In this document: in pieces, positions 1-64,000 of the stretch
Layout: every line of letters begins with the position of its first letter
How positions within the stretch are numbered: position 1 is the stretch's first letter
Assembly: GCA_035084275.1 (NCBI GenBank)
Contig: CM068771.1
Location: 2,232,001-2,296,000 of the forward strand
Source: Hydrolagus colliei
Lineage: Eukaryota
Length of the DNA: 64,000 bases
Direction: 5' to 3'
The notes under the pieces: generated by a model
Database searches by the model: none
Seen by the model: the letters and a program-made list of their open reading frames with translations, nothing else
What the model was told of the DNA's origin: nothing
Position numbers and translations under genes: made by a program

Positions 1-3000
1 AATGTCGAAGGGTGATTCCAGGAACTAACCTGAGACGCAATCGTACGCTGCGTAATCTGACAGAAAAAGCTCGGAATCTGAGCCTGAATCTGACACAAGC
101 TGACAAGAAGCTTCACTGTGAGGAGCATCAGGAGGAACTGAAGCTGTTCTGTGAAACAGACAAGAAACTGATGTGTGTGATTTGCAGAGATGCCCGAGAG
201 CACAGAAACCACAGCTTCATCCCCATTAAGGAGGCCATTCAGGTCTATAAGGTAAAACACACCAGATTGTCAATTGTGCTTTTTTTTTCTTTTAAATGTG
301 ATATCCCTCCACAGCCCTGGAGTCACCTCGAGTCACCTGAACTCCCTCACCCCCTCTGGCCTACCTCCCGCACTATCCTATCCTCCTCCCTCACTCTCCT
401 CCATACAACCCTCTCCACTACTCTCGATTCACTTGCCCCTCTCACCTCCTGAACCGCCTCCTATTCGCAAATCTCACCTCAGTTCTCCAGTCAACTCCGC
501 TGCTTCAAGTGTCAGGTCCGGGCCACCGAAGGCACCTGGATCAAATCTGGCCTAACTGTCAACCAGTAACCGGTGAATATATCTCCAAACCCATACGCAA
601 CCTGGGCTTCAGGTACGACCCCCAATTACCTCTTAGCTGGACTACTCCTCCGTCCTCTTCGCCGGTCTCTCCTTCGCCACCATTCACAAAATCCAGCTCA
701 TACAGAATTCCACCGCCCGACTTTTAACATGTGCCAAACTCCGCTCCCCGATTACCCCAGTCCTTGTCAGACTGCGCTGGCTCCCTGTCCAAGAGAGGAT
801 CGATTTCAAGATCCTCACTCTTGTATTTAAACTCACCAATCCTCTGCATCTCACCACCTCTCTGACCTCCTCTCTCCTCCCAACAGTACCCGCTGCCATC
901 GCTTCACCGGGTCTGGCCTCATCCCTGTCACCTGAATCCTCCGGTCCACTATTGGTTGTCATGCCTTCAGCCACTACGCCCAAGGCTCTGGAACTCCCTT
1001 CCTCACTCCCTTCGCCTCACCACCTCTTTTCCCACTTTCAGGTCTCGGCTACAGACCTTCCTTTTGATTGCGTTTTGGTCACGTTCTTCCCCCTCCCCGT
1101 TGCTCAGCCCCTGATCTGTTATTGGAAAGTGGTCTGAGACGCTGTCCGGCGTGGAGAGCATTATATAAATCCAAGTTGTGGTTGTTGTTGACCCATACCT
1201 CTCCCTCCTTCCACACCTTCGAAACTCCCCCCCACCATCCCACAACTCCTCTGTCATCACAACCATATCATCTATGTAGCCCACTCCCTGCTCTCTTGAA
1301 CCCATGCCCACTACTCTCCTTACCTCCCAGATGCACCTCCTTAACCCCTACTCTCTAACTCCATCAATCTCTCCCTTTCATCCAGTAACATTCCCAACCC
1401 CCACGAAACAGCCAGAATAGAACAAAAAAATTACATTGATAGAGCCCTTTCACGTTGGGATGGTGTCCGAAGGGACTGAACAACCTCATCCTGAAGAAAC
1501 TTTCCCTGGACGCAAACCCTCTCTCCAACAACTGGCCCATCTCCAACATTGCTTTTCTTTCCAAGCTCCTTGAATGAATCGTTGCTTCCTAGCATCGATC
1601 TTTCCGTTCCTACCACTCCCTCTATGAGCTTCTACAATCAGATTTCCATCCTCGGAGTAGCACAGCAGTCAAGGTCACAATTCTGTCCTTCTTTGACCTG
1701 TCTCCTCGTCCTCCTCGATCTCTAAGCCAACATTGATACCATGAGCCACTGATTTCTCCTGCACCACCTCTCACCTCAACCTTCAAGATTCTATCCCTTT
1801 GACTGGTTCAGATCCTACCTGTCACATTTCCCATCTCCACGTTTTCTCCACGTGTCTCATGCTCTGTTCCTCAGGTCTCTGGCATTGGACCCTGCGCTTC
1901 AACCTCTACAATCTGTTGATGATATCATCCGCAGAATTTGGTAAATTCCCAAAAGTATTGGGATCACACTCTACTCTATCTCTCGGTGTCCACCATCGAT
2001 TCCAGGACGACTGGTGTCTTGACAGGCTGCCTGTCAGACATCAAGTCCTGGATGAGAGACAACTTTCTACAGCTGAATGTCAGCAAGACCGAGGCTCTCC
2101 TAATTGGCTCACTCTAGTGTCTGAATCTCAGAGTCTGACAATATCAACATCCACAGCTGCACAATCCACCACACCAAGCCAGTCAGAAACATGGGTGTCT
2201 TGTTTGACACTGACCTGTCTTTTCTCCCCCATATACGTGCCATGACCAGCACTGCCTTCCACCACCTCTGCAACATTGCCCATCTCTGCCACTTCCTCAC
2301 CCCTCAGGCCGCTGAAACCCGTACACATGCGTTTGTCACATCAAGCTGTACTACGGCAACTCTCACTTTGTCAGCCTTCCCAACTCTCCCTCCACAAGCT
2401 GCAGATCTCCCAAACCTATGCAACTTATGTTCGCTCCTAGTCCTGGCTCCACGACCACATCACCACTATGTTTGCCCAGCCCCATTGGCTCCTCGTCCCT
2501 CAGAGGATCAAATTCAAGATGATCGTCCACTCTTTGAAAACCCTCTATATCTGAGGGTTATCCGAATGCACTCCGCAATATTTATTGTCATATAGATTTG
2601 GTGGCAAAAGCAGCAGCCAAATTGCACAAATTACCATCCCACAAATACCAAAGGGCTCAACACCAATTCCATTTGATGTCCAGGTCACCAGAGAAACTCC
2701 CTTTGCTAATAGCTGAAAATATTCTCCTGAATAATCCATGGATTTTAGTTTAACTTCTCATTTGAAGGACGGCACCTCTGATCATCCTACTGTCCACCAG
2801 CACTGCACTGGGCTGTCAGCTACAACAATAATAATATTAATCCTTGCATTTGATATCGCGCTTTTCACATCTTATCGATGTCCCAAAGCACTTCACAGAA
2901 TCGACTGTAAAGTGAATTGACTGAATATATTTGTGGGCGACTCACAGTAGCCAATTGCTCACAGCAGTGTCCCACAAACAGTGGATTTAAATGACCAATT

Positions 3001-6000
3001 TTTTAATTGTGTTTTTTTTTACGGATTATTAGTAGGTGTGTGGAGTAAGGAAACTTACCAAGATTTCGTCCTGACTTGCTTGGATTCGAGCACAGGTCTC
3101 CGGTCTCCCAAGCTTGCAAGACAAGTGCTCTAACCACTAAGCCACAGGAGCTCAGTGGATTCATAGATTCATAGAGTTTTACGGCACAAAAGGAGGCCAT
3201 TCGGCCCATCTAGTCTGTGCCGGCTCTTTGAAAAGAGCGATTCAATCCCACTGCCCTGCCCGCTCCCCATAGCCTAATAGACCTGTTCTCGCTAAATAAA
3301 GATCTAATTCCCTTTTAAAAGTTGTTATCGAATCAGCCTCCACCACCTTTTCAGGCAAAGCATTCCAGATTCGAACAACTCGCTGAGTGAAAAAATTTCT
3401 CCTCAGCTCCCCTCTACTTTGCTTTGAAACTATTTTAAATCTGTGACCACAAGTCACAGATTCGCCCACGAGTGGAAATGGTTTTTCTCTATTTGCCCTG
3501 TCGAAACCCCTCATGATCTTATAAACCTCTATTAGGTCTCCCCTCAATCTTCTCTGCTCCAGAGAGAATAATCCTAGCTTATCTAGCCTCTCCTCATAGC
3601 TGAAGTTGAACAATGGAGTTGAAAGTCCTGATATGGGAGTTGACCCACAATTTTGTGAATCACAGACAAGAGAAACACAAACTGAACCGGATTGTTGATG
3701 GTTTTTTCCTCACAGTTTTTATTTAATTGCAGGATAAAGTGAAATCCTCCTTAGATTCTCTCACACAGAGGAAGGCCGCGGCTCTAGAAGCTGAAGTTAA
3801 ACAGAAACAAAAGATTTCACAAGTGAAGGTATGTTATGTTTGACCGATCGTGTACAGTCTAGTCTCCTAGTGTGTCTCTCTTTACTCTATGTTCACTGTG
3901 TGATGTCTCAGTGTGACTCTTCACTGTGTATTCATGGGGTAGTCTGACGTTTGATTTTTCAGGATCAGGTGAGCAGTCTGCAGATGGATGTCACGGCTGA
4001 GTTTGCTAAAATGTACCAGAACCTGACTGACAGAGAGCAGCGTGTAATCCGAGAGCTCAGACAGCGAGAGGAGGAGATTTTACACAGAATGGAGACAAAT
4101 CTGCGAGAGATTCAGAGCCAATTAGATTCTGTTCAGCGGAAGCTCTCAGGGTTACAGAAACAGATTGAGAAAGACGCACTAATCTTTCTGCAGGTAAAGA
4201 GATGGCATTTTAACAGTTACACACAGTCTGGAGATAAGTCTGACAGTTAAACAGATCAGTAATTTGATTAAATAATTTATTAAAAACCTCAAATGAATCA
4301 ATTAAAAACCTCTCCCTCCAAACAAGCAGCAGTTCTGACGAAGGGCTGTAGACCCGAAACATTGCCTTTTTTTCCGCTCTCCATGGATGCTGCCTGACCT
4401 GCTGAGTTTCCCCAGCCACTTTTGTTGATTCAGATTCACAGCATCTGTAGTATTTTGTGTTTTGTTTCAGTACTTTGGTTGATGTTTTCTTAGATTCTAT
4501 GAATGACTCTGCTGCTGCCAATCAGTACAGAAATAAACCCACATCAGTCACTCTCAGTGCCTGCAGTGTCCCTGCAAACCAACAGCCCAGGACAGATGTG
4601 GTTAAGAATAATAATAAGCCTTGCATTTGACATAGAGCTTTTCACATCTTATCGACGTCTGAAAGCGCTTCACAAGTTACCATGGAATTTACATTGATTG
4701 ATCGGTGTGAGAATGTTGGCATCTAATTACAGTATAATTATGTGTTATATCATGTGAGCTCAGATCTGTTTGTGTTTATTTCACTAGGAGGAAGCTGCTC
4801 GGAAGAGAAGGTATGAAAAGCTTTTTACAAAACATCCCCAGAATTTAATACCTGAAGAAACACAAAGTGTAGGTTCAATTTATAGTATGTTTGACTCTGA
4901 TTTCAGGATCAGTGATGAGGGTTTTACACTCTCAGTGTGTGAGGATGATCTGCCTGTGGGAATATACAACAGACTTGTACAATACACAGCCTGGAGAGAG
5001 ATGTTACCCAACATCAGTCCAGGTAAATGGCTCCCACTGTCACACTGAAGCTTTGTGAATATTGTTACATTCACCTGGATCCTCACAGGTTAAACATTGC
5101 AATGCCCTCCATAGCCTGAGGTCAGGTTGGATGATCCTATGCCTGTAGTACCGCGTTACCCTCAGCAGGTGGTGCTGTGTGAGCCCAACAGCCACTGCAG
5201 TCACACTGTCACCAGCGCCCTCTGCTGGCGGCGGGACAACATCACTGCAGTTGATTCTAACCCTCTGATGGGGATCAGTCACCAGCTCCCGGGTCCTAGT
5301 GCCCATCCCTTGACAATACTTTGTGTTGTTTCTCTCTCACTCCACTCTCTCTCACCACCTCACTACACTTTGTGCTGTTTCTTTTCCACCGTGCCTTTGG
5401 TCATCTTTCTACCCCTGGCTCAGTCCTGGGATCCGCTATTGTTAAGCGCTCTGAGACACCTTCCAACGTGGAGGACATTATATAAATCAAAGTTGTTGTG
5501 GTTGTTGTTGTTTCTCTCTCTCAGCTCCGGCCTCTCTGACTCTGGATCCTGAAACAGCCCATCCATTGCTCATCCTGTCTGAGGACCTGACCAGTGTGAG
5601 ACTCGGAGACACAGAGCAGCGACTCCCTGAAACCCCAAAGAGGTTTAGTTTCTGGCCCATTGTCCTGGGGTCTGAGGGCTTCACATCAGGGAGACATTAC
5701 TGGGAGGTGCAGGTGGGGAACAAGACAATGTGGATTGTGGGATTGGCCAGAGAGTCTGTCAACAGGAAACAACTAATCACATGGTCACCAGAGGAGGGGG
5801 TCTGGGGGGTGTGGTTGGTGGACGGGGACTATGTGGCTCTGACATCAACTCCCACCCCCCTGCCCCTGACAGTGAAGCCCGGGAAGATGGGAGTTTACCT
5901 GGACTATGAGGGGGGACAGGTGTCAGTTTACAACGCAGATAACATGTCTCATCTCCACACCTTCACCCAAACTTTCACTGAGAAACTGTATCCTCTATTT

Positions 6001-6060
6001 TGTCCCTTTCCTAACGAGGACGGAAACAACTCAGAGCCGCTGAAAATCTGCTGGTTATAA
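1..6060 (+). CDS. TRIM-A: RING-Bbox-coiled-coil-PRY/SPRY (B30.2) TRIM E3 ligase (TRIM39/TRIM69/A33-like class), 5'-partial
   Basis: Exons <1-251 (RING end, B-box [16 protein letters not shown]), 3733-3828 (96 bp), 3963-4193 (231 bp), 4788-4810 (23 bp), 4907-5022 (116 bp), 5525-6060 (PRY/SPRY: [30 protein letters not shown], stop TAA). All GT-AG with compatible phases; 96/231/23/116 is the typical TRIM exon series. Confidence 0.93.
300..2550 (+). mobile_element. Stack of decayed L2 fragments in TRIM-A intron 1 (mirrored at 61850-64000, partly shared with TRIM-B intron 1)
   Basis: Broken L2 motifs (RNLG.., [14 protein letters not shown]) and a (GTT)n tail at about 1180. Confidence 0.75.
2830..3159 (-). 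mobile_element. Orthologous copy of the tRNA-SINE in TRIM-A intron 1
   Basis: Reverse complement of 61231-61565. Confidence 0.85.
3160..3604 (-). mobile_element. CR1-clade LINE 3' end nested in a SINE
   Basis: ORF 3242-3613 ([44 protein letters not shown]), (TCTATGAA)-type tail; empty site at about 61230. Confidence 0.9.
5383..5508 (+). mobile_element. Severely truncated L2 tail in the PRY/SPRY acceptor tract (shared with TRIM-D, about 59245-59375)
   Basis: TSD TGTTTCT at 5376-5382 and 5509-5515; empty site in TRIM-C. Confidence 0.8.
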
Positions 6061-7266
6061 CCCGTTATGTTGATTATGTTGTTTATTGTTGTTGTTTGAT
6101 GCCCCCTCCCCATTTGCCCAATGGCCTCCCCCCCCCACCCCCACCCCTTCTTCGCTTACTCGCTTTCCCGGAGGCAGTACAGATATGGTTAATGATCAAA
6201 GAATCTCGATTGTATTCATGTATTGATGTGTCTATTATTAAATAAACTATTCTCACCGAGTTGGGATTGTCAAGTCTTTCGTGCCTCAAGGAATTGTACC
6301 AAAGCTAAGCATATTGGGCATGTTCACAATGGAATAGAGAAGGTTGAGAGGTGACATGATTACTGTCTTTCAGATTCTAAAGGGGAAATACAATATAGGT
6401 CATCACAGCATGGTTCAACTTGTCCAGAAAAGCAAAGACAGAGGAGTTGGCCTGTGATTGAAGGGGGTAAATTCAGAACAAACGTACGCAAACACTATTT
6501 CAGTGAGCGACTGGTGAACCTGTGGAACAGGCTTCCTAGGGGTTCGGTTGATTCTTTTAAACACAGATGAGCTGGTTTTCTTTTAGGGAATAACATTATG
6601 AGGAAAAGTATATAGGTAGTTTGGGACGTATGTGGAAGCAAATATACATATGAAGAATAAGGTAGCTTGACTAAAGAATATAATGCTTTGTGAACTGTAC
6701 AAAGTGTCGTTATATCCCAACTGATTGAGAAAAGAACAGACCGTTTCATCTTGTGTATCTGGCCTGTCTGGCTCCACACACTAGAGCAGCCCTGAGGTAG
6801 CTGTGGGGACAAGGACAGACCAGTTTGTCACTAACAATACACTAACTGACCTGTTAACCACAGAGGGGAAGGGCTTAGCACAAGAACTGGGGCCATAGAT
6901 ATAATAACAACAATAATAATAATCCCTGCCATTGATCTAGTGTCTTATCAAATCTTCAAGATGTCACAAAGCACTTCACTAGTCTGAGTGTGATCACTGT
7001 GTGACACACTCGCTCACATTCACACTCGCTCACACACTACAATCTGTGGAAGAAGGTTAGATCTCAGGGGGCAGTTACAGCTCAGTGGGGGTTATAGTTC
7101 AGTGAGGTAGGTCGCAGCTCAGGAGGGGAGGTTACAGCTCGGGCTCAAATAGAGAATTGTTTCCATCTCTGGAATGCTAATAATAATAATAATCTTTATT
7201 ATTGGAGGAAGACAGTCCTGGTCAGGGACTGAGTGTGAGGAATGAAGGACAACTGTGGGTCGAATG

Positions 7267-7634
7267 TAGGGTCCGGCGATTTATTGATATATCGGTTATA
7301 TCCGATATAATTTTCATATTGATATGCCGATATCGGAATTCAAAATACATCGATATATTCAAAAATTCTATGTATCGGAAAAATTTGATATATTGCAAAT
7401 ATCGATATATCGTTTCCGGCGATATATCGGTATATCGGAAGATGTCGGTATAATGCGGACTTTTTTAACTTACCTTGTCAATATCCAAATCCGAGTGCAC
7501 ACTGGAATGCGCACACATGTGCAGGACAACGAAAACACGCGATATTGATATCGGCAATATCAATATATCGGTATATATCGGTATGGGCAAACGGATATAT
7601 CTATATCGGAAAATTTCCATATTGACGGACCCTA
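7267..7634. mobile_element. Non-autonomous hAT transposon (MITE), 368 bp
   Basis: TIR TAGGGTCCG..CGGACCCTA; perfect 8-bp TSD GTCGAATG (7259-7266 and 7635-7642); many CGATA/TATCG subterminal motifs; empty site in the right arm at about 55875. Confidence 0.92.
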
Positions 7635-8554
7635 GTCGAATGTGACTCCAAATGTTGTGAACTGATTCAGAATGTCTGATGGATAGGCCGGAGAGGCTGA
7701 GGAGGTCAAAGTCACAGGTTAGAAGACATTGACAGGAGTCATGAGAATCACTTCATCTTCCTCCATTGCCAGTCCTCCATCATCCACCTCAATGGGACCG
7801 CACTCTCTTGGTTTAAGTACTACCTGACAAACCAGCAGAACTACATCCTTCCTCTGGGTGATGTCATCTGCAGGCTTTGGGGTTAACTCTACATGTGTGC
7901 GGATGAAGCCCAACTCTACTTTTCCACACCCAGTCTACTCCTCTCTTCCCACAGCAGTACCCACTCTCTCTGTTCTACTGGGACCAGCCATCTCCGTGAA
8001 TCCTCCGCTCCATCATTAGTGGCTTTGCAGGGAGAGGGAGGAGAGGGAGAGTGCAGTAGGAGTGGTTAGGGAGTAGGGGAGTAGAGATGGAGGAGCCAAG
8101 AGGAATTTGTTGGGGCAGGACAGTGGGAGAGGTAGGAGAAGAGGGTGGTGTACACACTATGGTCAAGTACACACTGGCACAAATGTTGTATGAAACAAAT
8201 ATAAATTTATTAATTCAGATTAGTGACAATATTGGTGATTAAAGGAATTCAATAGAATAATTCTTACGTATCCCTGTTTGATTCCCTCGATGGTGATGGT
8301 GACCAAACCAATGTTGCAAAAGAGATGGAGAAGTAAATTCCAATTCCATTCAATATCCTCCAAAAGGTATTCAGCTGCTGCTGCACAGATGCCCGTTCGA
8401 TCAGCCAAACAATGATCATGTACTGTTGCTTGGTTTGAGAGTGTCAATGGAGGTTGAGATTCATTGTAGTCATATTCTTTATCTTTCCTTCTTCTCCCTC
8501 TTGTTTCTCATTGATTGTGGAGTGTCTCTCTCTTGATCGGCAAGACTTTGCTTC

Positions 8555-8560
8555 TTTATT
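8555..8560 (-). terminator. Candidate polyadenylation signal of MHC-1
   Basis: AATAAA on the minus strand, the first I noticed downstream of the stop; conserved in MHC-2 at 53584-53589. Confidence 0.4.
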
Positions 8561-9388
8561 CCCAAAGTTAGAGGTGTTTAGTCCATACCTCCCGTGAGAA
8601 TGTTTGTTTTTACCAACACAGCTGTTTCTCCAGCTACAGATCATCTCTCCATTAGGAAGGCAGAGAAAAGGCCTGAAAAACAGTTTGCCATCCACACACA
8701 GTCCCCAGTCTCCTCTGCAAAGCCAGACAAACCAGCTCCCATCACAACTGACCAACCACATGTCTCAAATATACACATACTATTTATAAAAATGAGATAT
8801 TCATTTGACACATTAATTACAGATGTTACTAAACTAACACATTCTATGGTCACATGGAAATACCTGAGATTACACATTGTTACATACAATCACAAAGCAA
8901 CAAAAGCAACGTACTGACAGCTATACAGTCTCCAAATATACAGTCAATTCACTCTACAGTGTAGTCTGTGAAGTGGTTTGAGACATTGATAAGATGTGAA
9001 AAGTGCTATAACAAATGCAAGATAATAGTAATGTAGATAAATGCAAAGATTCAATAACAACAATAATATTACATTTGTATAGCGCCAATCATGTCGAGAG
9101 GACAACCCCAAGGTGCTGGACAGTGAATGGTTTAAAACAGTTGTGAAAATCAACTGAGGGGTGTCGAGAAAAAATGGTTTCACGCAACAGGTTCTACTGA
9201 CCTGGAAAGCATTGCATGAAATATCGCAAGAAGCCGATTGAAAAGTTTTATGAGAGAAGCAGAAACTTGTTTGGGAAGGACAAGTTTGCAGGGTTACAAG
9301 GAGAGAGTGGGAGAGTGGGAATATTTTGGACATCGCTTCTCAAAGAGCTGACACAGACACGATGGGCTGAATGACCTCCTTCTGTGCT

Positions 9389-9752
9389 CAGGGCCAGCAC
9401 TAGCTTTAGTCAAACTAGGCGGTAGCGTAGGGAGTCAAAATTTGGGGTAGTGCGCCAGTCCTAGTTACAGAGCACGTACAGTTTGCCACATACATCGAAA
9501 ATGACTGCTGTTATCTGCTGGCGTATAGTGGCAGAGGCGCGGGAGTTACCAGTAACCTGACTGGACAATGCTTAATACTTAAATACAACACAAGTGTGTT
9601 TTATATATGAATGTATAACTATCACCATTACTTTCATTGATAACTAATTACTGTATATGAATTTTTAGTATTAACATTAGCTTATCAAATGTTACTAGGG
9701 GCGCACATCTGAAGGCTCGCCTAGGGCACCATGTACTCTTGTGCCTTTCCTG
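9389..9752. mobile_element. Older hAT-like MITE (also at 52392-52755)
   Basis: Degenerate TIRs CAGGGCCAGCACTAG / CAGGAAAGGCACAAG (10 of 15 match); only partial 8-bp flank match. Confidence 0.4.
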
Positions 9753-9972
9753 TCTGCACAGTGTCATTCTGTTATTTTATGATATTTCAAATGTGACTTT
9801 AGTGGCTCTTAATATCTCTGTGAATCACAAGGTGATGGATCAGTTTCCAGCTTACACTTGATGCTGAGTTAAGGAATCTGCTGTTGAACCAGTGACTCTG
9901 AGAGAGAATCAGTGACCGAGAACAAAGGAGACACCAGAACACTCAGGCCTTCCCTCTGCTCCTCTCAGTCCC

Positions 9973-24653: not shown

Positions 24654-24665
24654 TTGGGGCTGAAA

Positions 24666-44331: not shown

Positions 44332-44350
44332 ATTGGCTGTGAGTGAGTCA
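44332..44350 (+). promoter_or_regulatory. Inverted CCAAT and AP-1 motif, MHC-2 proximal promoter
   Basis: ATTGG at 44332-44336 and TGAGTCA at 44344-44350. Confidence 0.5.
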
Positions 44351-44586
44351 GTGAGAGTCTGATCAGAGACAGTATTGGGGTTAGAGCTGAGAGGCTGTGG
44401 TGGGGAGCAGAGGGTCTGGCTGGACAGACAGACAGACTGTCAGTGTCAGTGACCAGCCATGGCCAGGATGATAAGGTCTCTGATGGCTCTCCCTGTCCTC
44501 CTGTCTGTGTGTGGGGGGCTGGACAGTAAGTGGCCACAGACTCTGTTACTGTTTGTTCTTATTGATTCTCTTGTTATTTGGGGGAG

Positions 44587-44740
44587 TGGAGGGGCTGAGG
44601 GTGTGTTGAGGGGCTGAGGGTGAGTTGAGGGGCTGAGGGTTAGTTGAGGGGCTGAGGGTTAGTTGAGGGGCTGAGGGTGAGTTGAGGGGCTGAGGGTGAG
44701 TTGAGGGGCTGAGGGTGAGTTGAGGGGCTGAGGGAGGTTG
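44587..44740. repeat. 19-bp minisatellite (TTGAGGGGCTGAGGGTGAG)n, about 8 copies
   Basis: TTGAG recurs at 44606, 44625, 44644 and onward, in MHC-2 intron 1. Confidence 0.93.
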
Positions 44741-45963
44741 AGGTATTGAGGGTGTGTTGAGTGGCTGAGGGTGGCTGGTGAGAGGCTGGGTGTGGAGTGT
44801 TCCCGAGTTGATAGTGTGTTGAGGGATGGAAGGATGTTTCCTCTAATGAATTATCTTGTTTTTAGGGGAGAGAGGGAGGGGTTGAGTGTGTGCTAAGGGA
44901 CTGAAGTTATGATGATGGTCTGAGGGAGAGCTGAGAGATTGAAGTTGAGAGGGGAGGGACTGGGGGGTGGTGGGGCTAGAATATGGGGGAGGGGTTGAGT
45001 GTTTGGGGAGTGAGTGATGGGCTGGGGGATGGTTGAGGAGCTATGGGAGGGGCCGGGGAAGGGTTGGATGGGGTGGAAGAGGTGTGGAATGGTTCGGTTG
45101 CGAGGGAGGGATTGAGATAGTGAGTGATGGGCTGAGGGGAGGGACTGGGGAGAGTGATGGGCTGGGGGAGGGGATGAGGGACTGTGGGTGTTTAGGATGG
45201 GGGATGGGGAAGCGGAAGACGGGCTGGGGAAGAGAGTGGCTAAGGTACGGGTTGAGAGACTGGGAGAGTGAGGAGCGGGTGAGGGTCTGGGGAGTGTGAT
45301 GGGCTGGGGGATGGGGTGAAGGACTGGGGGTGTGAGGGGCTTGAGGAGGGTGCCAGGGAAGAGCTGAGTGGCTGGAGTATGATTGGCTGGGGATGAGGTG
45401 CTGGGAGGGTGTGCGAGGGGCTAGAGGAGAGGATGATGAACCAGGGGAGCGGGTGATTGGATCCATTCCCAAATCCCTTTGCCTGCTTCCCCCCTTGCTT
45501 CATTAAAGACTGGTCTCAAGACCTTCCTCTTCGACCTTGCCTTCATCTGCCATCCTACCTCTCTGCCCTCATCCCAACCCTACACCTCCACCCCCCCACC
45601 ATGCTTACATCCTGACCCCCGACTGTCCAGCGCCTTGGGACGTCCTCTAAATGTGAAAGACGATCTACGAATGTAATGTTGTTGTTGTTGATATTGAGGG
45701 GTTGGGGGAGGGTTTGGTGGAGACAGAGATTGCACCTGAGTTACTTTTCTCAGTCTATCACAATTGGATGAGATTGCTCTCACTGTCTCTCTGTGTCTAC
45801 ACAGAGCCCTGTGAGCTGTGTATGGGCAGTCTGAATGAAGTGTAGTCCTGTAATGGTGTTGAATCCAAACACAATGTAGATAGTAACGTGGTTGTTGTTG
45901 ATTCACTGAGTCCTTTAATTCTAACTTTATAAATCAACCTCTTTCAAATCTATCTCTTGAATC

Positions 45964-46400
45964 CTTATTATCTCCTTTGCTGATTCTGATATCAGGTCTC
46001 CTTCTTTCAAAAGCTTTTCTCTTAATCCAGTACCTTTCATGCCAACTATTATCTGGTTATGTATCATTTTGTCTCCTAATGTAGTGTGATTTTTATCAAG
46101 GGATTTTAGTACTGCACAGCACTGATTGAATGATTCTGTGGGTCTTTGGTTTCTTGTTCCAAACTTCAGTCGGTCAATTAATTATACATGATTTTTTTCA
46201 ACAACATCTTTCCCTCATAATATTCATCGTCTCATTCGATGGCATGTCCACCTCTCTTTCAAGGATTGTAAAATATTCCGTTACTTCCTCACTTGCTACA
46301 TTCAAAAATATCACAAACCAGTTTCTGTGGCAGATTCATTATGTTGGCTGCAAGTCCCAAAATTTTAAATCACTTTCAGAACCATTGCCAATTGTGAGTT
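45964..46400 (-). mobile_element. Ty3/Gypsy LTR-retrotransposon gag relic in MHC-2 intron 1
   Basis: Hand translation: IFLNVASEEVTEYF ... DRLKFGTRNQRPTESFNQCCAVLKSL...KMIHNQIIVGMKGTGLREKLLKEGDLISESAKEIIR. Resembles the Gypsy gag pattern RxQxxxES...MIRDxIVxG...LRxKLL. Not in the ORF track. Confidence 0.75.
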
Positions 46401-53629: not shown

Positions 53630-54965
53630 AACAACAAACAAAACTTACATTTATATAGCGCCTTTCACGTTGAGAGGACATCCCAAGGCGCTGTACAGTC
53701 AGGTAGGACAAGAGCAGGGTGGGAAGGATCCGGGCAGGATGAAGAATAGTAGGAAAAGTAACTATATATTAGTGGGCAAAACGCGGCAGCCAAATTGAGC
53801 ACAGCAGTGTCCCACAATCAGTCATGGAAGTGGGACTAGGGGCAAAAGGGGGTAAAGAAGCAAAAGGGGAGGGGTCGAGGCAGGGGGAAGAAAAGCAGGA
53901 AAGTCGACTGTATATTTGTGGGCGAAACGCGGCAGCCAAATTGCGCACAGCAGTGTCCCCACAAACAATCGCGAAAATGGGGCCAGGGGAGAAAGGGGGA
54001 AAAGAGGGTAAGGGGGAGAGGGAGGGAAAGGTGGGATGGGTTAGGGTTAGGGAGGAAGAGGGGGGAGAAAGGGGGGAAAGGAAGAGAGGGATGGAAAGAT
54101 GGGTGGGGGCAAGATCAGGAAGAGGGAAGAGGGAGGGAAGGGGAAAAGGGAGGAGAGAAAGTGGGGAAAGGGAGTGAGGGAAGAAGAAGATGGGGGCAGG
54201 GGTGGGGGGAATCAAACAACAATAATAAACAACAAAAGCAATAATATTAACAACAAAAACAGCAACAAACAATAACCAACAATCGTCCAGCAACCACTCC
54301 TTGTCCTCGCCGCCCGCCTGGATGATCCCTGAGATGGCGAGAAAAAAGGGCCCAGTGTGGTGTCAGGCCCCAAAACCCACCGGCTCCTCAGTCGGTGAAC
54401 CCGGGGACTCGGTGATGGCCCTGGCACCTCGGACATGGTGTGTCTGGCCGGCTCGCACAGCAGCAGCAGCAGCAGCCCGATCGCCGTCTGGATCTCCCGC
54501 GACGAGATGATCCGTCGCTTGCAGCACCTGCGTGCTCTCCCCCTCGCGGAAGACGTGCGCCACCCGCTGCCTGAGGAAAGTGCCAAGGTCGCGGCCTTCC
54601 TAGGTCCTGTCGAGGGGCCACTCTTCGCACAGCCGGAGGAAGCGCCGACAGCGAATGGCCGCCATTCCCTCCGTGATACTCCCCGTCGTCCCAAAAAGAT
54701 GGCTTCGTTGGCCGGCTGCCCATAGAGGAAGAACCGGCAGCGATGGAAGCCGGCTCCAGCTGGTGGGCTGAGCGGTGCATAGCGTGAAAGCTGTGTCCCC
54801 GCGATCGTTCCAGCCCGAAGATCTCTAGCCTCGGGAGTGGGTGGTCCCGTGTGAAAACAAATATCACTATATATCTAATATTACTATTAGATAGAATAGA
54901 TGATATAAAATATAAATATAAAATTTCTTCTATCGCCAGGGAGGGGGCGAGGTGGAGAGAGTGCA
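53630..54965 (-). mobile_element. Composite CpG-rich insertion ending in an L2 tail
   Basis: Absent from the left arm (contiguous at about 8520); has a CpG-rich block 54300-54850, a purine tract, two SINE-core copies and an L2-type tail at 53630-53700. Confidence 0.6.
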
Positions 54966-57900
54966 GGTGCACAATCAATGAGAAACAAGAGGGAGAAGAA
55001 GGAAAGATAAAGAATATGACTACAATGAATCTCAACCTCTATTGACGCTCTCAAACTAAGCAACAGTACATGATCATTGTTTGGCTGATCGAACGGGCAT
55101 CTGTGCAGCAGCAGCTGAATACCTTTTGGAGGATATTAAATGGAATGGAATTGGAATTTACTTCTCCATCACTTTTGCAACATTGGTTTGGTCACCATCA
55201 CCATCGAGGGAATGAAACAGGGATACGTAAGAATTATTCTATTGAATTCCTTTAATCACCAATATTATTACTAATCTGAATTAATACATTTATATTTGTT
55301 TCATACAAAATTTGTGCCAGTGTGTACTTGACCATAGTGTGTACACCACCCTCTTCTCCTACCTCTCCCACTGTCCTGCCCCAACAAATTCCTCTTGGCT
55401 CCTCCATCTCTACTCCCCTACTCCCTAACCTCTCCTACTGTACTCTCCCTCTCCTCCCTCTCCCTGCAAAGCCACCAATGATGGAGGGGAGGATTCACAG
55501 AACCCAGAGGTGGCTGGTCCTGGTAGAGCAGAGAGTGGGTACTGCTGTGAGTAGAGAGGAGTAGACTGGGTGTGGAAAAGTAGAGTTGGGCGTCATCCGC
55601 ACACGTGTGAAGTTAATCCCAATATCTGTGGATGACATCACCCAGAAGGAGCATGTAGATGAGATGTAGTGCTGACGGTTTGTCAGGTAGGACTCAAGCC
55701 AAGCGAGTGTAGTCCCATTGAGGTGGATGATGGAGGACTGGCAATGGAGGAGAATTAAGTGATACTCATGTCTCCTGTCAATGACTTCTAACTTGTGGCT
55801 CTGACATCCTCAACCTCCCCTCCCCGGCCTATCCTTCAGACTTTCTGAATCAGTTCACAACTTTTTGGAATTAGGTTCGACCCACAGTTGTCCTTCCTTC
55901 CTCACACCCGGTCCCTGATCAGAACTGTCTTCCTTTAATAATAAAGGTTATTATTATTATTAGCATTCCAGAGATGGAAACAATTCCCTATTTGAGCCCG
56001 AGCTGTAACCTCCCCTCCTGAGCTGCGACCTACCTCACTGAACTATAACCCCCACTGAACTATAACCCCCACTGAGATGTAACTGCCCCCTGAGGTCGAA
56101 CCTTCTTCCCCAGATTGTAGTGTGTGAGCGAGTGTGAATGTGAGCGAGTGTGTCACACAGTGAGCACACTCAGACTAGTGAAGTGCTTTGAGACATCTTG
56201 AAGATTTGATGAGGCACTAGATCAATGGAGGGATTATTTATATTGTTGTTATTATATCTATGGCCCCAGTTCTTGTGCTAAGCCCTTCCCCTCTGTGGTT
56301 AACAGGTCAGTTAGTGTATTGTTAGTGACAAACTGGTCTGTCGTTGTCAAACATCCTGTGATGCCCTATATTGTATTTCCCCTTTAGAATCTGAAAGACA
56401 ATAATCATGTCACCTCTCAACCTTCTCTATTCCAGTGTGAACATGCCCAATATGTTTAGTTTTGTTAGAATTCCTTGAGGCACAAATGACTTGACAATCC
56501 CAACTCGTTGCGACTAGTTTAATTAATAGTAGACAGATCAACACATGAATATAATCGAGCAATAAAGCAATCACAATATTACCCGCTCTCTTTGACTCCA
56601 GACAGTAGATGACAGTGGAAGGAGTTCAGTTATTTAACTCTCTCCCTGTATCCTCCTGTTACTGTACTGAAGCTGGCAAAGCATTGCTGATTATAGTACA
56701 AATTCTCCTAATCTGCCATTGCTGCTGTCTTGTGAGCATATTTCATCATTAACCATATCCTGTATTCCCTTGGATTACTCAAGGTTGCTAATAATTAAAC
56801 TTCACCAGCCCTCAATAGGCCCATTTCTTATTTGGAGTTGTTCTGACACATTCTGCAAGATCCTCATCTGTTTATCATCTTTCAAACATGTGGTAACAGC
56901 CGACACAGGCTGGTCAACCGACATCCCCCTGACATCTGGACCCTCACCCTCTTTCTTCTAAACTAAGAAAAACAATTCTAGTTAAGGTTATCCCTTGTGA
57001 TCAATAGACTAAAGGTGCAGCCAAACACATAGTCATTTTACTGAATTTGTCCAAGCTTGAATCACATATTCAACATTCCCTTATATGTAATTTATAGACA
57101 ACAGGAAATAAACAGCCAGATCTATGTTGTCGAACTGTTGCTCTTCACAATTCAGTCGTTCCTTTCCATCAATTATTTTGCTTGATCTCCTCTGTATTTT
57201 CTCGATTCTCCAATAGCCTTGTCACACTGCGGCCAGAAATGTACCCAGTACATAGAGCATTGATGGGAGAGCTTCAGTTCATTGTCAGTCTGCATTCCCA
57301 GGTCCTCTGTGTTGCCGATCAATATTATTTTGCTTCTATTCCAATGATAGTCCCTCCCACAATTTTTTGATCCCATTTTTACTTTATGTTTTTCACATTC
57401 AATTTCATTGGCCAACCTAATGCTCATTGAGGAGATGAAGCCCAGTGGGTGGGTTTGGGGGAGGGGGGTAGGGGGTGGCTCCATTACACTGTGTAATGGT
57501 GTGGGTGGGGCTGGGTCACCATGGGCTGTGGAGGCTGTGGAGCTGCCTGGCTCAGGACTGGAGACGGCCACAGAGGCTACACTCCATTGATGCCGACAAT
57601 CAGTTCTAATCTTAACTGATTAACTGGAGCCAAACATTGTTCACTCCTCGACATCAACGGCCTCAGAGCGACATCAAGGCTTTAGCTCATAGGGAACCTA
57701 GATTGGAATTTATTCCTAAAACACAGACAGTGAATTACATGGAAACTGAGCCAAATTGTGCACAGCAGAGAACCACAAACAGTCACGGAAATGGAGCCAG
57801 GGGAGAAAGGGGGAAAGAGGGCAAGGGGAGAGGGAGGGAAAGGTGGGGTGTGGTACAGTCAGGGAGGAATTTGTGGGAGAAAGGCAGGTAAGGAGGATAG

Positions 57901-58702: not shown

Positions 58703-61102
58703 TTATAACCGGCAGATTGTCAGCGGCTCTGAGTTGTTCCCGTCCTCATTATAGAAAAGACCGAGGAGAGGATACAGTCTCTCAGTGAAAGTGCTGGTGA
58801 AGGTGTAGAGATGAGACATGTGATCAGCGTTGTAAACTGACACCTGTCCCCCCTCATAGTCCAGGTGAACTCCCACCTTCCCGGGTCTCACTGTCAGGGG
58901 CAGGGGGGTGCGGGGTGACGTCAGAGCCACATAGGCCCCGCCCCACAGCCTCACCCCCCAGACCCCCTCCTCTGGTGACCATGTAATCCATTGTTTCCTG
59001 TTGACAGACTCTCTGGCCAATCCCACAATCCACTCAGTCTTGTTCCCCACCTGCACCTCCCAGTAATGTCTCCCTGATGTGAAGCCCTCAGACCCCAGGA
59101 CAAAGGGATAGTCACTAAACCTCTTTGGGGTGTCAGGGAGCGGCTGCTCATTGTCTCCGTGTCTCACACTGGTCAGGTCCTCAGACAGGATGAGCTCGGG
59201 ATGGGCTGTGTCAGGATCCAGAGTCAGAGAGGCCGGAGCTGAGAGAGAGAAACAACAACAACCACAACAACTTTTATTTGTATAATGTCCTCCACGTTGG
59301 AAGGCGTCTCAGAGCGCTTGACAATAGCGGATCCCAGGACTGAGCCAGGGGTAGAAAGATGACCAAAGGCACAGTGGAAGAGAAACAGCACAAAGTGTAG
59401 TGAGACGGTGAGAGAGAGTGGAGTGAGAGAGAAACAACACAAAGTATTGTCAAGGGATGGGCACTAGGACCCGGGAGCTGGTGACTGATCCCCATCAGAG
59501 GGTTAGAATCAACTGCAGTGATGTTGTCCCGCCGCCAGCAGAGGGCGCTGGTGACAGTGTGACTGCAGTGGCTGTTGGGCTCACACAGCGCCACCTGCTG
59601 AGGGTAACGCGGTACTACAGGCATAGGATCATCCAACCTGACCTCAGGCTATGGAGGGCATTGCAATGTTTAACCTGTGAGGATCCAGGTGAATGTAACA
59701 ATATTCACAAACCTTCAGTGTGAGAGTGGGAGCCATTTACCTGGACTGATGTTGGGTAACATCTCTCTCCAGGCTGTGTATTGTACAAGTCTGTTGTATA
59801 TTCCCACAGGCAGATCATCCTCACACACCAAGAGCGTAAAATTCTCATCACTGATCCTGAAATAAGAGTCAAACATACTATAAATTGAACCTACACTATG
59901 TGTTTGTTTGTGTGTTACATTCTGGGGATGTTTTGTAAAAAGCTTTTCATACCTTCTCTTCCGAGCAGCTTCCTCCTAGTGAAATAAACACAAACCGATC
60001 TGAGCTCACATGATATAATACATCATTATAATGTAATTAGATGCCAACATTCTCACACCGATCAATCAATGTAAATTCCATGGTAACCTGTGAAGCGCTT
60101 TCAGACGTCGATAAGATGTGAAAAGCTCTATCTCAAATGCAAGGCTTATTATTATTATTCTTAACCACATCTGTCCTGGGCTGTTGGTTTGCAGGGACAC
60201 TGCAGGCTCTGAGAGTGACTGATGAGGGTTTATTTCTGTACTGATTGGCAGCAGCAGAGTCATTCATGGAATCTTAAGAAAACATCAATCAAAGTACTGA
60301 AACAAAACACAAAACACTACAGATGCTGGGAATCTGAATCAACAAAAGTGGCTGGGGAAACTCAGCAGGTCAGGCAGCATCCATGGAGAGAGTAAAAAAA
60401 GTCAACGTTTCGGATCTACAGCCCTTCGTCAGAACTGGGGCTTGTTTGGAGGGAGAGGTTTTTAATTAATTTATTTGAGGCTTTTAATTATTTATTTAAT
60501 CAAATTACTGATCTGTTTAACTGTCAACAACAACAACAATTTACATTTATAGAGCGCCTTTCACGTCGGGAGGACGTCCCAAGGCTTTGGATTATATCTC
60601 CAGACTGTGTGTAACTGTTAAAATGCCATCTCTTTACCTGAAGAAAGATTAGTGCGTCTTTCTCAATCTGTTTCTGTAACTCTGAGAGCTTCTGCTGAAT
60701 AGCATTTAATTGGCTCTGAATCTCTCGCAGGTTTGTCTCCATTCTGTGTAAAATCTCCTCCTCTCGCTGTCTGAGCTCTCGGATTACACGCTGCTCTCTG
60801 TCAGTCAGGTTCTGGTGCATTTTAGCAAACTCAGCCGTGACATCCATCTGCAGACTGCTCACCTGCTCCTGAAAAATCAAGCGTCAGACTTTACCCGATG
60901 AACACACAGTGAAGAGAGACACACTGAGACATCACACAGTGAACATAGAGTAAGGAGAGACACACTGGGGGCCTAGACTATACACGATCGGTCAAACACA
61001 ACTTACCTTCACTTGTGAAATCTTGTGTTTCTGTTTAACTTCAGCTTCTAGAGCCGCGGCCTTCCTCTGTGTGAGAGAATCTAAGGAGGATTTCACTTTA
61101 TC
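58703..61102 (-). CDS. TRIM-D: coiled-coil and PRY/SPRY exons of a TRIM gene (RING/B-box exon lies beyond the window end)
   Basis: Exons 61007-61102, 60638-60868, 59953-59975, 59741-59856, 58703-59238 (full SPRY, stop TAA); open frame. Sequence 61103-64000 is the inverted copy of TRIM-A intron 1. Confidence 0.92.
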
Positions 61103-61565: not shown

Positions 61566-64000
61566 ATTGTTGTAGCTGACAGCCCAGTGCAGTGCTGGTG
61601 GACAGTAGGATGATCAGAGGTGCCGTCCTTCAAATGAGAAGTTAAACTAAAATCCATGGATTATTCAGGAGAATATTTTGAGCTATTAGCAAAGGGAGTT
61701 TCTCTGGTGACCTGGACATCAAATGGAATTGGTGTTGAGCCCTTTGGTATTTGTGGGATGGTAATTTGTGCAATTTGGCTGCTGCTTTTGCCACCAAATC
61801 TATATGACAATAAATATTGCGGAGTGCATTCGGATAACCCTCAGATATAGAGGGTTTTCAAAGAGTGAACGATCATCTTGAATTTGATCCTCTGAGGGAT
61901 GAGGAGTCAATGGGGTGGGCAAACATAGTGGTGATGTGGTCGTGGAGCCAGGACTAGTAGAGAACATAAGTTGCATAGGTTTGGGAGATCTGCAGATTGT
62001 GGAGGGAGAGTTGGGAAGGCTGACAAAGTGAGAGTTGCCGTAGTACAGCTTGATGTGACAAACGCATGTGTACGGGTTTCAGCGGCCTGAAGGGTGAGGA
62101 AGTGGCAGAGATGGGCAATGTTGCAGAGGTGGTGGAAGGCAGTGCTGGTCATGGCACGTATTTGGGGGAGAAAAGACAGGTCAGTGTCAAACAAGACACC
62201 CATGTTTCTGACTGGCTTGGTGTGGTGGATTGTGCAGCCGTGGATGTTGATATTGTCAGTCTCTGAGATTCAGACACTAGAGTGAGCCAATTAGGAGAGC
62301 CTCGGTCTTGCTGACATTCAGCTGTAGAAAGTTGTCTCTCATCCAGGACTTGATGTCTGACAGGCAGCCTGTCAAGACACCAGTTGTCCTGGAATCGATG
62401 GTGGACACCGAGAGATAGAGTAGAGTGTGATCCCAATACTTTTGGAAATTTACCCAATTCTGCGGATGATATCATCAACAGATTGTAGAGGTTGAAGTGG
62501 AGGGGACCAAGGCCAGAGACCTGAGGAACAGCGCACGAGACATATGGAGAAAACGTGGAGATGGAAAATGTGAGAGGTGGGATCTGAACCAGTCAAAGGG
62601 ATAGAACCTTGAAGGTTGAGATGAGAGGTGGTGGAGGAGAAATCAGTGGTTCATGGTATCAATGTTGGCTTAGAGATCGAGGAGGACGAGGAGACAGAAG
62701 GATCCCAGGTCAAAGATGGACAGAATTGTGACCTTGACTACTGTGCTGCTCCGAGGATGTAAATCTGATTGTAGAAGCTCACAGTGGTAGGAACGGAAAG
62801 ATCGAAGCTGGGAAGCAACGATTCATTCAAGGAGCTTGGAAAGAAAAGCAATGTTGGAGATGGGCCAGTTGTTGGAGAGAGGGTTTGCATCCAAGGAAAG
62901 TTTCTTCAGGATGGGTTTGTTCAGTCCCTTCCCGACTTGAAAGGGCTCTATTGAAGTAATTTTTTTGTTCTATTTTGGCTGTTTCTTGGGGGTTGGGAAT
63001 GTTACCGGATGAAAGGTAGAGATTGATGGAGTTAGAGAGTAGGGGTTAAGGAGGTGCATCTGGGAGGTAAGGAGAGTAGTGGGAATGGGTTCAAGAGAGC
63101 AGGGGGTGGGCTACATAGATGATATGGTTGTGATGACAGAGGAGTTGGGTGGTTGGGGGGCAGTTTTGAAGGTGTGGAAGGAGGGAGAGGTATGGGTCAA
63201 CAACAACCACAACTTGGATTTATATAATGCTCTCCACGCCGGACAGCGTCTCAGACCACTTTCCAATAACAGATCAGGGGCTGAGCCACGGGGAGGGCGA
63301 AGAACGTGACCAAAAGCGCAGTCAAAAGGAAGGTCTGTAGCCGAGACCTGAAAGTGGGAAAAGAGGTGGTGAGGCGAAGGGAGTGAGGAAGGGAGTTCCA
63401 GAGCCTTGGGCGTAGTGGCTGAAGGCATGGCAACCAATAGTGGACCGGAGGATTCAGGCTACAGTGATGAGGCCAGACCCTGTGGAGCGAAGGCAGTGGG
63501 TACTGTTGTGAGGAGAGAGGAGGTCAGAGAGGTGGTGAGGTGCAGAGGAGTGGTGAGTTTAAATAGAAGAGTGAGGATCTTGAAATCGATCCTCTCTTGG
63601 ACAGGGAGCCAGCGCAGTCTGACAAGGACTGGGGTAATCGGGGAGCGGAGTTTGGTACACGTTAAAATTCGGGCGGTGGAATTCTGTATGAGCTGGATTT
63701 TGTGAATGGTGGCAGAGGAGAGACCGGCGAAGAGGACGGTCGGGTAGTTGAGCTAAGAGGTAATTGGGGGTCGTACCTGAAGCCCAGGTTGCGTGCGGGT
63801 TTGGAGATATATTCACCGGTTACTGGTTGACAGTTAAGCCAGATTTGATCCAGGTGCCTTCGGTGGCCCGCACCTGACCCTTGAGGCAGCGGAGTTGACT
63901 GGGGAACTGAGATGAGATTTGCGAATAGTAGGCGGTTCAGGAGGTGAGAGGGGCAAGTGAATTGAGAGTAGTGGAGAGGGTTGTATGGAGGAGAGTGAGG

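Follow-up and report, generated by a model that had tools for sequence, protein, structure and literature searches.

The 64-kb window, by which we mean the whole stretch of chimaera DNA analysed, is one palindrome in which TRIM-A, MHC-1 and TRIM-B mirror TRIM-D, MHC-2 and TRIM-C (Table 1). Our verdict is that the window represents TRIM/class I linkage combined with segmental duplication in an MHC-type region. We consider it likely that a non-classical class I gene inside a TRIM cluster was copied by a single inverted duplication of about 30 kb, with no functional pairing between the two families. An earlier note on this DNA had proposed a co-regulated TRIM/class I module duplicating as one unit. 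The features it listed are all present, and its reading is partly supported overall. Its suggestion of functional coupling is unsupported, as nothing in the sequence shows the two gene types to cooperate.

Table 1. Annotated features of the window, with coordinates, strand and the evidence used.
Feature	Coordinates	Strand	Evidence
TRIM-A, class IV TRIM, 5' end cut by window start	1-6060	+	tblastn (C. milii P0066), splice sites, PRY/SPRY
TRIM-A CDS exons	3-251, 3733-3828, 3963-4193, 4788-4810, 4907-5022, 5525-6060	+	
Palindrome arm 1, outer part	389-14023	.	inverted pairing with 64000-49427; self-BLAST, per-segment divergence
MHC-1, non-classical class I-like, frame intact	12450-20123 (ATG at 20123)	-	Pfam MHC_I, C1-set; PDB matches; exon models
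MHC-1 exons	leader 20123-20057, alpha1 18929-18669, alpha2 14014-13739, alpha3 13626-13348, TM 12566-12450	-	
LINE insertion, MHC-1 alpha1-alpha2 intron	15933-18656	+	Pfam RVT_1; arm alignment breaks at 15932 and 18657; LINE map
MHC-1 upstream region	20124-20860	-	alignment with MHC-2 upstream, motif scans, C. milii core conservation
TRIM-B proximal promoter-like stretch	24490-24665	+	alignment with TRIM-C 41818-41990 (-)
TRIM-B, complete class IV TRIM, 468 aa	24666-33790 (ATG at 24666)	+	RING, B-box, coiled-coil, PRY, SPRY; TRIM72 match
TRIM-B exons	24666-25076, 29197-29292, 30512-30742, 23-nt exon near 31855, 31974-32089, 33261-33790	+	
TRIM-C, truncated, likely pseudogene	36132-41817 (ATG at 41817)	-	frame translations, Pfam, tblastn, gene model
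TRIM-C exons	41817-41407, 38167-38072, 37914-37684, 37086-37064, 36967-36852, 36478-36132	-	
MHC-2 upstream region	43974-44458	+	alignment, motif scans
MHC-2, class I-like with premature stop	44459-50998 (ATG at 44459)	+	sequence read, translation
MHC-2 exons	leader 44459-44525, alpha1 46930-47190, alpha2 49436-49711, alpha3 49822-50100, TM 50882-50998	+	
TRIM-D, exons 2-6, frame intact	58703-61102	-	frame translations, tblastn, splice sites
TRIM-D exons 2-6	61102-61007, 60868-60638, 59975-59953, 59856-59741, 59238-58703	-	

The gene models give the order TRIM-A(+), MHC-1(-), TRIM-B(+), TRIM-C(-), MHC-2(+), TRIM-D(-), with a TRIM on both sides of each class I-like gene as the earlier note had described. 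In self-BLAST, the outer part of arm 1 matches its inverted partner at 94-97% identity, through both genes and the intergenic DNA alike, which bears out the proposal that A/MHC-1 and MHC-2/D were duplicated together. Pairing is less close toward the palindrome centre near 35-36 kb (alpha1 89%, core promoter 94%, TRIM-B with TRIM-C 85-89%), and this gradient, together with the mosaic TRIMs described below, speaks against a simple three-gene palindrome with uniform arms. The arms differ from each other by 2-13% and carry arm-specific transposon insertions of 0.4-2.7 kb. Because the window is a palindrome, the alternation amounts to one TRIM-class I-TRIM unit copied once rather than a recurring pattern, and it counts as a single independent arrangement; likewise, the head-to-head orientation kept in both arms follows from the duplication itself. 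The earlier note had overlooked the palindrome, as well as the MHC-2 stop, the TRIM-C truncation and the imperfect ISRE match. The introns are heavily loaded with LINE sequence.

Both class I-like genes encode alpha1/alpha2 domains, a C1-set alpha3 domain (Pfam MHC_I and C1-set) and a TM segment, with one domain per exon (67/261/276/279/117 nt, all phase 1), and for MHC-1 full-length PDB class I matches cover residues 27-294 (E=8e-43). Aligned with HLA-A2, MHC-1 and MHC-2 each have the disulphides C101-C164 and C203-C259 and the N86 glycosylation site. Classical class I is recognised by eight peptide-termini residues (Y7, Y59, Y/R84, T143, K146, W147, Y159 and Y171). In the window copies K146, Y171 and R84 are retained, while Y7 is G/V, T143 is L, W147 is L, Y159 is Q/N, and Y59 aligns to R at a position that is ambiguous by two residues. 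T143 and W147 are changed to L throughout the lineage, Y7 and Y159 are variable, and nearly all eight residues persist in the classical-type elasmobranch sequences aligned alongside. In the tree this lineage is a clade with 100/100 support, in which the window copies branch as the sister group of all 11 C. milii copies, and by sequence the class I genes are assigned to a holocephalan-specific non-classical lineage. Best matches of the class I-like gene and the TRIMs come from Callorhinchus milii at ~70% identity, in agreement with the earlier identification of class IV TRIM and non-classical class I-like genes from an early-branching jawed vertebrate. MHC-2 is interrupted by an in-frame TGA in alpha2 at 49664-49666, where the MHC-1 codon is CGA. 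The LINE in the MHC-1 intron is antisense to the gene, contains a reverse-transcriptase ORF (16666-18330) and is absent from MHC-2.

All four TRIMs belong to the class IV "A33/NF7-like" family, which has expanded enormously in cartilaginous fish. TRIM-B has the RING, B-box 2, coiled coil, PRY and SPRY in the order that defines class IV and aligns end to end with TRIM72 (E=2e-60). TRIM-A and TRIM-D are complete as far as the window reaches; exon 1 of TRIM-A is cut by the window start, with the frame intact inside the window, and exon 1 of TRIM-D falls past the window's last position. In TRIM-C the B30.2 exon is cut short: its homology stops in mid-SPRY, where ...ALTSPP is followed by TTENG and a stop codon. 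About 60 aa at the end are missing, and with them the last third of the SPRY domain; the Pfam SPRY match spans positions 1-60 of 121 only and tblastn covers 293-403 of 470. Judged by its sequence, TRIM-C is likely a pseudogene, and with MHC-2 this makes two of the six genes disabled. The four TRIMs are monophyletic with the tree (B,(A,C,D)), in which B, the most diverged, is the outlier. Their identities are mosaic, since exon 1 is 93.8% identical between A and B and C is 94-97% identical to A and D over exons 2-6. This topology does not mirror the palindrome arms, and the congruence of paralogue trees expected of copies evolving as one unit is not seen.

The binding-domain exons of both gene types are unusually diverged, as the earlier note had suggested for the ligand-binding surfaces, at 2.5-5 times the level of nearby introns and with dN/dS mostly at or below 1. 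Between A and D, 10.5% of sites differ in the B30.2 exon against 4.2% in introns (p=1e-8); for class I, 10.1% differ in alpha1+alpha2 against 2.2% in alpha3, the alpha2-alpha3 intron and the 3' part (p=9e-15). The residues at which MHC-1 and MHC-2 disagree fall preferentially at groove positions (18/55 vs 16/122, p=0.004). Strict positive selection on the groove was rejected, as class I omega is below 1 (0.46-0.87) and synonymous divergence rises in parallel. Among the TRIMs, omega is 0.13-0.27 in exon 2 and 0.6-1.7 in the N-half of B30.2, where close pairs reach ~1 or above, and the A-D changes cluster in discrete PRY/SPRY patches, with 12 sites showing three or more states. Changes in PRY/SPRY patches and an N-half omega of ~1 or above recall the TRIM5/TRIM22-type antiviral TRIMs, a likeness of sequence; the window TRIMs differ in that their synonymous divergence is also raised, which indicates exchange between paralogues as much as selection. 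The rapid divergence of the binding exons is likely due to paralogue exchange together with relaxed or diversifying selection.

An NF-kB consensus (GGGGATTTCC, at 20814-20823 and 43974-43983) and, 34 bp from it, an ISRE-like motif (20767-20780 and 44017-44030) lie between both head-to-head pairs, as the earlier note had claimed. The NF-kB site is a perfect match; the ISRE is off by one mismatch in MHC-2 and by two in MHC-1, which leaves the intact gene with the poorer match. Of dinucleotide-shuffled versions of the window, 5.7% contain such a pair within 60 bp, and NF-kB sites are not enriched per se (4 observed vs ~13 expected). The block is 350-700 bp from the class I ATG and 2.1-3.9 kb from the TRIM ATG, its ISRE half abuts a LINE-derived fragment, and it was not found in the 1.5 kb upstream of the homologous C. 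milii class I genes. Two further ISRE-core matches (12542 and 50896) fall inside the TM exon and were not accepted as regulatory.

Each gene appears to have its own promoter, as conservation in the spacers is confined to two separate gene-proximal stretches. On the class I side the core promoter is conserved in C. milii. It holds an inverted CCAAT (Y-box; 20243-20253 in MHC-1, 44329-44339 in MHC-2) and an AP-1-like site (20229-20239 and 44343-44353), with an (ACAG/AC)n microsatellite upstream of MHC-1; S and X boxes were not recognised in motif scans upstream of the class I genes. A 58-bp element present in MHC-1 and its C. milii homologues is missing upstream of MHC-2. The TRIM-B proximal stretch contains a putative GC/CACCC box (24600-24612) and two tandem GGAAGT sites, probably ETS-type (24632-24652). 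In gene pairs with a bidirectional promoter, under about 1 kb separates the divergent starts, and a CpG island is usual. Here the distances, measured between ATGs, are 4,543 bp for MHC-1/TRIM-B and 2,642 bp for TRIM-C/MHC-2, matching the spacing given earlier, and the head-to-head spacers are unequal in length (2.6-4.5 kb), consist of at least 28-35% dispersed repeats and hold no CpG island (CpG observed/expected 0.2-0.5). We therefore infer no promoter shared between TRIM and class I genes. The class I promoter would combine the conserved Y-box core with an NF-kB/ISRE-like block peculiar to this locus, and the TRIM promoter would be the GC-box and ETS-type proximal stretch.

Instead of alternating, each family forms clusters of its own in C. 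milii and in the published elasmobranch tables. The C. milii comparison covers recorded loci, which may not be the window's true orthologous region. Scaffold MU250313.1 (P0001, P0003, P0006) carries five to six class I genes in 49 kb and a choline-transporter-like gene; these class I genes belong to the same 100/100 clade (63-71% identity) and share the replaced groove residues, the conserved core promoter and the leader, but differ in having no NF-kB/ISRE-like motif within 1.5 kb upstream and no interspersed TRIM exon on that 49-kb scaffold of a fragmented assembly. No class I exon was found at the three C. milii TRIM loci examined. One skate locus (L007) has one gene only. In the MHC map of Verissimo et al. 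2023 (PMC10751288), TRIMs carry the same labels as the best hits of this window, "zinc-binding protein A33-like / nuclear factor 7-like", but form clusters separate from class I, whereas in the window the two are interleaved. In the tables of that study, megabases of one chromosome separate the A33-like TRIM clusters from the MHC-Ib clusters, and sawfish A33-like TRIM clusters sit among class III genes, including next to slc44a4; its main text does not discuss TRIMs (PMC10751288). Holocephalans have been described as data-deficient.

We propose that a lineage-specific non-classical class I gene would have lain inside a class IV "A33/NF7-like" TRIM cluster of an MHC-type region, and that a block of TRIM, class I and TRIM would have been duplicated once and inverted to give T-M-T / T-M-T. 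Gene conversion or unequal recombination would later have exchanged sequence between the copies and, along with transposon insertions, made them mosaic, and the loss of one class I and one TRIM copy would be ordinary birth-and-death evolution. The families would be neighbours because both reside in this region, and this proximity, not a functional pairing, would be why they were copied together. The human class I region has multi-gene duplication blocks, in which unrelated neighbouring genes were likewise copied as one segment, and arm-to-arm converting palindromes exist; gene conversion and pseudogene formation followed there too. Converting palindromes have uniform arm identity, whereas here it falls from the outer parts to the centre. 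Palindromes are also a known failure mode of long-read assembly, and two haplotypes wrongly joined, or a chimera folded back on itself, could give a mirror image. Fold-back artefacts are near-identical, however, and duplicated haplotypes usually lie in direct, not inverted, orientation, while these arms differ in sequence and insertions and the inner pair B/C reaches only 85-89% identity, with C truncated; an artefact is hardly credible.

The locus might instead be a decaying remnant, its open frames being recent unexpressed duplicates on the way to pseudogenes and its exon divergence reflecting relaxed constraint. The two disabled copies, a class I omega of ~0.6 in every domain, the conserved promoter element also lost in MHC-2 and the heavy intronic LINE loads fit this account. 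We regard it as unlikely, as the reading frames of TRIM-B and MHC-1 are complete, with every splice site, the cysteines and the glycosylation site preserved, TRIM exon 2 is constrained, and exon divergence exceeds intron divergence beyond what relaxation alone can produce. The module of the earlier note would join an intracellular sensor/E3 ligase and a surface ligand, interferon/NF-kB-inducible and selected and duplicated together, with the TRIM possibly acting on the class I-like protein. It draws on the head-to-head pairs with an NF-kB/ISRE-like block in both arms, on the co-duplicated pair, on the hyper-diverged binding domains of both families and on TRIM/class I linkage recurring in vertebrates (PMC4263668, PMC3137616). 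A co-duplicating cassette would be known by repeated independent co-duplication, congruent paralogue trees and conservation in relatives; instead we found one inverted duplication, a TRIM tree at odds with the palindrome, and families that form single-family clusters in C. milii and are unlinked at fine scale there and in the elasmobranch tables. The block lies near class I and far from the TRIMs, which have a conserved proximal stretch of their own, the spacers are repeat-rich, and one member of each gene type is already dead. Two dead copies do fit the birth-and-death part of the proposal, but "one unit" reduces to a single inverted duplication with mosaic copies. We consider such a module quite improbable, and a chimaera version in which co-evolving A33-like TRIM and class I-like genes would share an NF-kB/IRF element partly captured from a LINE very improbable. 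If such a module did exist, it would be an early instance of innate genes in the MHC being wired functionally to class I genes.

To our knowledge, TRIM/B30.2-class I linkage has been found in every major jawed-vertebrate group examined. Such clusters are described in mammals, crocodilians, birds and teleosts (PMC4263668, PMC3137616, PMC8222901), where class IV PRY/SPRY TRIMs likewise lie close to class I and both families duplicate, and cooperation on grounds of linkage has already been proposed in print (PMC4263668). Compared with these, the window has finer interleaving, 2.6-4.5 kb between start codons, and holds a non-classical holocephalan lineage arising from one inverted duplication. Whether the linkage is ancestral, and whether it is functional, are long-standing questions. 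With this window the linkage gains a holocephalan example of very fine scale, in which the joint copying of a class I gene with a TRIM gene can be seen as a clean, datable event; this supports an old linkage and has no bearing on function. For expression, the intact MHC-1/TRIM-B pair and C. milii, with the same class I lineage but no TRIM neighbours and no NF-kB/ISRE block, provide a natural comparison.

The window, 64 kb free of N runs, holds six genes of two families, which were resolved into exon models using the Callorhinchus milii TRIM protein P0066 as a guide and by reading splice sites. In Pfam searches one set of open frames carries RING, B-box, TRIM coiled-coil, PRY and SPRY domains, and the other carries MHC_I and C1-set domains. 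All TRIM genes have an exon plan of 411/96/231/23/116/~530 nt, and both class I-like genes (MHC-1 and MHC-2) have a phase-1 plan of 67/261/276/279/117 nt. As the earlier note had proposed, every class I gene lies between two TRIM genes, one tail-to-tail and the other head-to-head with it, and the ATG-to-ATG spacings of 4,543 bp (20123 to 24666) and 2,642 bp (41817 to 44459) agree with its values of about 4.5 and 2.6 kb.

Genes and insertions mapped in the window
Feature	Position	Strand	Remarks
TRIM-A	1-6060	+	5′ end cut by window start
MHC-1	ATG 20123, down to 12450	-	leader, alpha1, alpha2, alpha3 and TM exons
TRIM-B	24666-33790	+	complete, 468 aa
TRIM-C	41817-36132	-	SPRY incomplete
MHC-2	ATG 44459, mapped to at least 50998	+	class I-like
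TRIM-D	61102-58703	-	exon 1 beyond window end
LINE	15933-18656	+ (antisense to MHC-1)	2.7 kb, in alpha1-alpha2 intron; absent from MHC-2
CR1-like LINE tail	3160-3600		ORF 3242-3613 on minus strand; in TRIM-A intron 1; absent from TRIM-D
Arm-specific transposon insertion blocks	9808-11096; 53635-54969		1.3 kb each

The alternation of TRIM and class I genes is one arrangement copied once, with no repeated pattern, since all three genes of each arm pair with those of the other. Self-BLAST gives an inverted match of 94-97% identity between 389-14023 and 64000-49427, spanning TRIM-A/D, the DNA between genes and, in the class I genes, the 3′ two-thirds, which bears out the proposed joint duplication of A/MHC-1 and MHC-2/D. 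Pairing extends inward at lower identity through the alpha1 exon (89%), the core promoter and leader (94%), the upstream block (~76-85%) and TRIM-B vs TRIM-C (85-89%). The whole window is thus a single palindrome centred near 35-36 kb, in which (A, MHC-1, B) mirrors (D, MHC-2, C).

The copies have since become mosaics. TRIM-A exon 1 (3-251) is 93.8% identical to TRIM-B (24828-25076), intron included, and the 83 shared codons hold six differences, every one non-synonymous (Sd=0, Nd=6), a pattern suggestive of a recent conversion and subsequent amino-acid change. From exon 2 onward TRIM-C is 94-97% identical to A and D, and its exon 1 is the most distant. In the B30.2 (PRY/SPRY) exon no informative site groups A with D, though they are palindrome partners, and 12 sites have three or more states. 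The CR1-like insertion at 3160-3600 is a post-duplication marker. Together, the mosaic identities and arm-specific insertions fit one inverted duplication followed by paralogue exchange, insertion and loss. The intronic LINE carries plus-strand ORFs at 16119-17072 (317 aa) and 16666-18330 (554 aa, RVT_1); related fragments occur across the window (e.g. 26584-27714, 38556-40754, 62283-63143), and the family's activity may be recent.

We consider it likely that the simplest account holds, in which a class I gene situated inside a TRIM cluster would have been copied together with its TRIM neighbours by one inverted segmental duplication, and conversion, insertions and pseudogene formation would then have reshaped the copies. 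One rival is that the locus is mostly decaying. As judged from the reading frames, two of the window's copies, MHC-2 and TRIM-C, are disabled, by defects that the earlier note does not mention: the MHC-2 alpha2 exon has an in-frame TGA at 49664-49666 (CGA in MHC-1; a CpG transition) and the gene lacks a 58-bp promoter element common to MHC-1 and the C. milii genes, while TRIM-C homology ends mid-SPRY, followed by a stop with no remnant of the last ~60 residues downstream. TRIM-B is complete, and we regard general decay as unlikely. The element missing from the MHC-2 pseudogene (GAGAAACCACAGATCACAACCTGTCTCAGAGCCTTTTACC...; ~58 bp) lies at 20284-20345, directly upstream of the MHC-1 Y-box. About 1 kb of 3′ flank, probably 3′ UTR, is kept in TRIM-A, B and D at 87-92% identity (6495-7264, 34095-35119, 55876-57251); its absence from TRIM-C is consistent with a deletion at the centre of the palindrome. 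The inverted symmetry could also be an assembly artefact, which we judge very improbable; each arm has insertions of its own.

A further rival is a co-regulated functional TRIM/class I module, for which the earlier note had cited an NF-kB and ISRE block between the divergent genes. The block is present in both arms: a perfect NF-kB consensus (GGGGATTTCC) lies 34 bp from an ISRE-like motif (ATTTTCACTTTCAC in MHC-2, ATTTTCACTTTTAC in MHC-1) in a conserved stretch 5′ of MHC-1 and MHC-2 alike. NF-kB motifs show no enrichment across the window (4 observed vs ~13 expected), and an NF-kB/IRF pair within 60 bp was seen in only 5.7% of shuffles. Its reading as a shared element is weakened, however, because the block lies 350-700 bp from the class I ATG and 2.1-3.9 kb from the TRIM ATG, because sequence 3′ of the ISRE-like motif (44031-44086, 20711-20766) is homologous to a LINE reverse-transcriptase segment, because no NF-kB-like or ISRE-like motif occurs within 1.5 kb of the C. 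milii homologues, which conserve the core promoter and leader, and because TRIM-B and TRIM-C share a ~170-bp stretch of their own directly upstream of the ATG (GC/CACCC box, two GGAAGT sites). A second partial copy at 23930-24000, ~700 bp upstream of TRIM-B, runs into "GVPQG...LLFLIY" and carries no NF-kB site; a transposon may be the source of the ISRE-like half. Neither spacer contains a CpG island; their lengths are 1.9 kb apart, and dispersed repeats make up at least 28-35% of them. We find such a module quite unlikely. (ACAG/AC)n microsatellites (20350-20700, 44190-44300) separate the block from the class I core promoter, with CA-rich repeats at the same place in C. milii class I promoters, and 3′ of the TM exons there are TG/CA-rich tracts (11900-12350, 51100-51580).

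The excess divergence of the binding exons is real. Between TRIM-A and TRIM-D, 10.5% of B30.2 exon sites differ vs 2.2-8.3% in introns (4.2% pooled; p=1e-8), and MHC-1 vs MHC-2 differences are 13.0% in alpha1, 7.2% in alpha2 and 2.2% in both alpha3 and the 3′ part. At positions that we take to be groove-equivalent, amino-acid differences are enriched (18/55 vs 16/122, p=0.004) and variability among 13 lineage members is higher (0.91 vs 0.54 bits, p=4e-4). TRIM omega is 0.6-1.7 in the B30.2 N-half vs 0.13-0.27 in exon 2. The proposed diversification of binding surfaces stands to that extent, but class I omega is below 1 (0.56-0.66 per domain, 0.87 at groove codons), synonymous divergence climbs in parallel, and divergence reaches 12% in the intron next to alpha1 as well. 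Positive selection accounts for the excess no better than imported tracts and relaxed constraint do.

Over alpha1-alpha3, MHC-1 aligns with class I heavy chains of solved structure (E=8e-43), and its nearest database proteins are all from C. milii (58-76% identity; the rest at most 37%). Aligned to HLA-A2, members of the lineage retain both disulphides, N86, K146, Y171 and the non-mammalian R84, while T143 and W147 are replaced by L throughout and positions 7 and 159 vary; the set is nearly complete in the elasmobranch classical-type sequences aligned alongside. By these residues the lineage is non-classical. In a maximum-likelihood tree the holocephalan class I sequences form a long-branched clade (support 100/100), with MHC-1 and MHC-2 sister to all eleven C. 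milii members, which points to a chimaera species other than C. milii and to a separate expansion in each of the two. TRIM-B aligns end to end with TRIM72, and its B30.2 matches pyrin, BTN3A1, TRIM7 and TRIM21; its relatives carry the annotation "zinc-binding protein A33-like / nuclear factor 7-like", and its 5,106 matches at E<=1e-20 are mostly from cartilaginous fish. The four window TRIMs form one clade, in which B branches outside the other three.

The alternation did not recur in the C. milii loci and the sawfish gene tables consulted. C. milii scaffold MU250313.1 (49 kb, covered in full by loci L001-L003) contains, in both orientations, five to six class I genes that belong to the window lineage, and no TRIM exon, and a choline-transporter-like gene (L003 249-3225) flanks the cluster; the three C. 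milii TRIM loci examined contain only TRIMs. On sawfish chromosome 34, many A33-like/NF7-like TRIMs are interspersed with class III genes, their neighbours being slc44a4 (two A33-like TRIMs directly after), neu1, TNF/LTA and BTN-like genes, and MHC-Ib clusters lie ~9 Mb from the A33-like TRIMs (Verissimo et al. 2023 supplementary tables, PMC10751288; TRIMs are not mentioned in its main text). The C. milii neighbour and the sawfish slc44a4/TRIM order hint that the window class I lineage may reside in a class III-type region. From these loci and tables, the TRIM and class I families both reside in the MHC of cartilaginous fish and normally form clusters apart from each other. Tight linkage of TRIM39 to class I genes, together with a suggestion of cooperation, has been published for crocodilians and mammals (PMC4263668), as has an association of fish TRIMs with the MHC, and the present arrangement is a fine-scale holocephalan instance of this already known TRIM/class I linkage.
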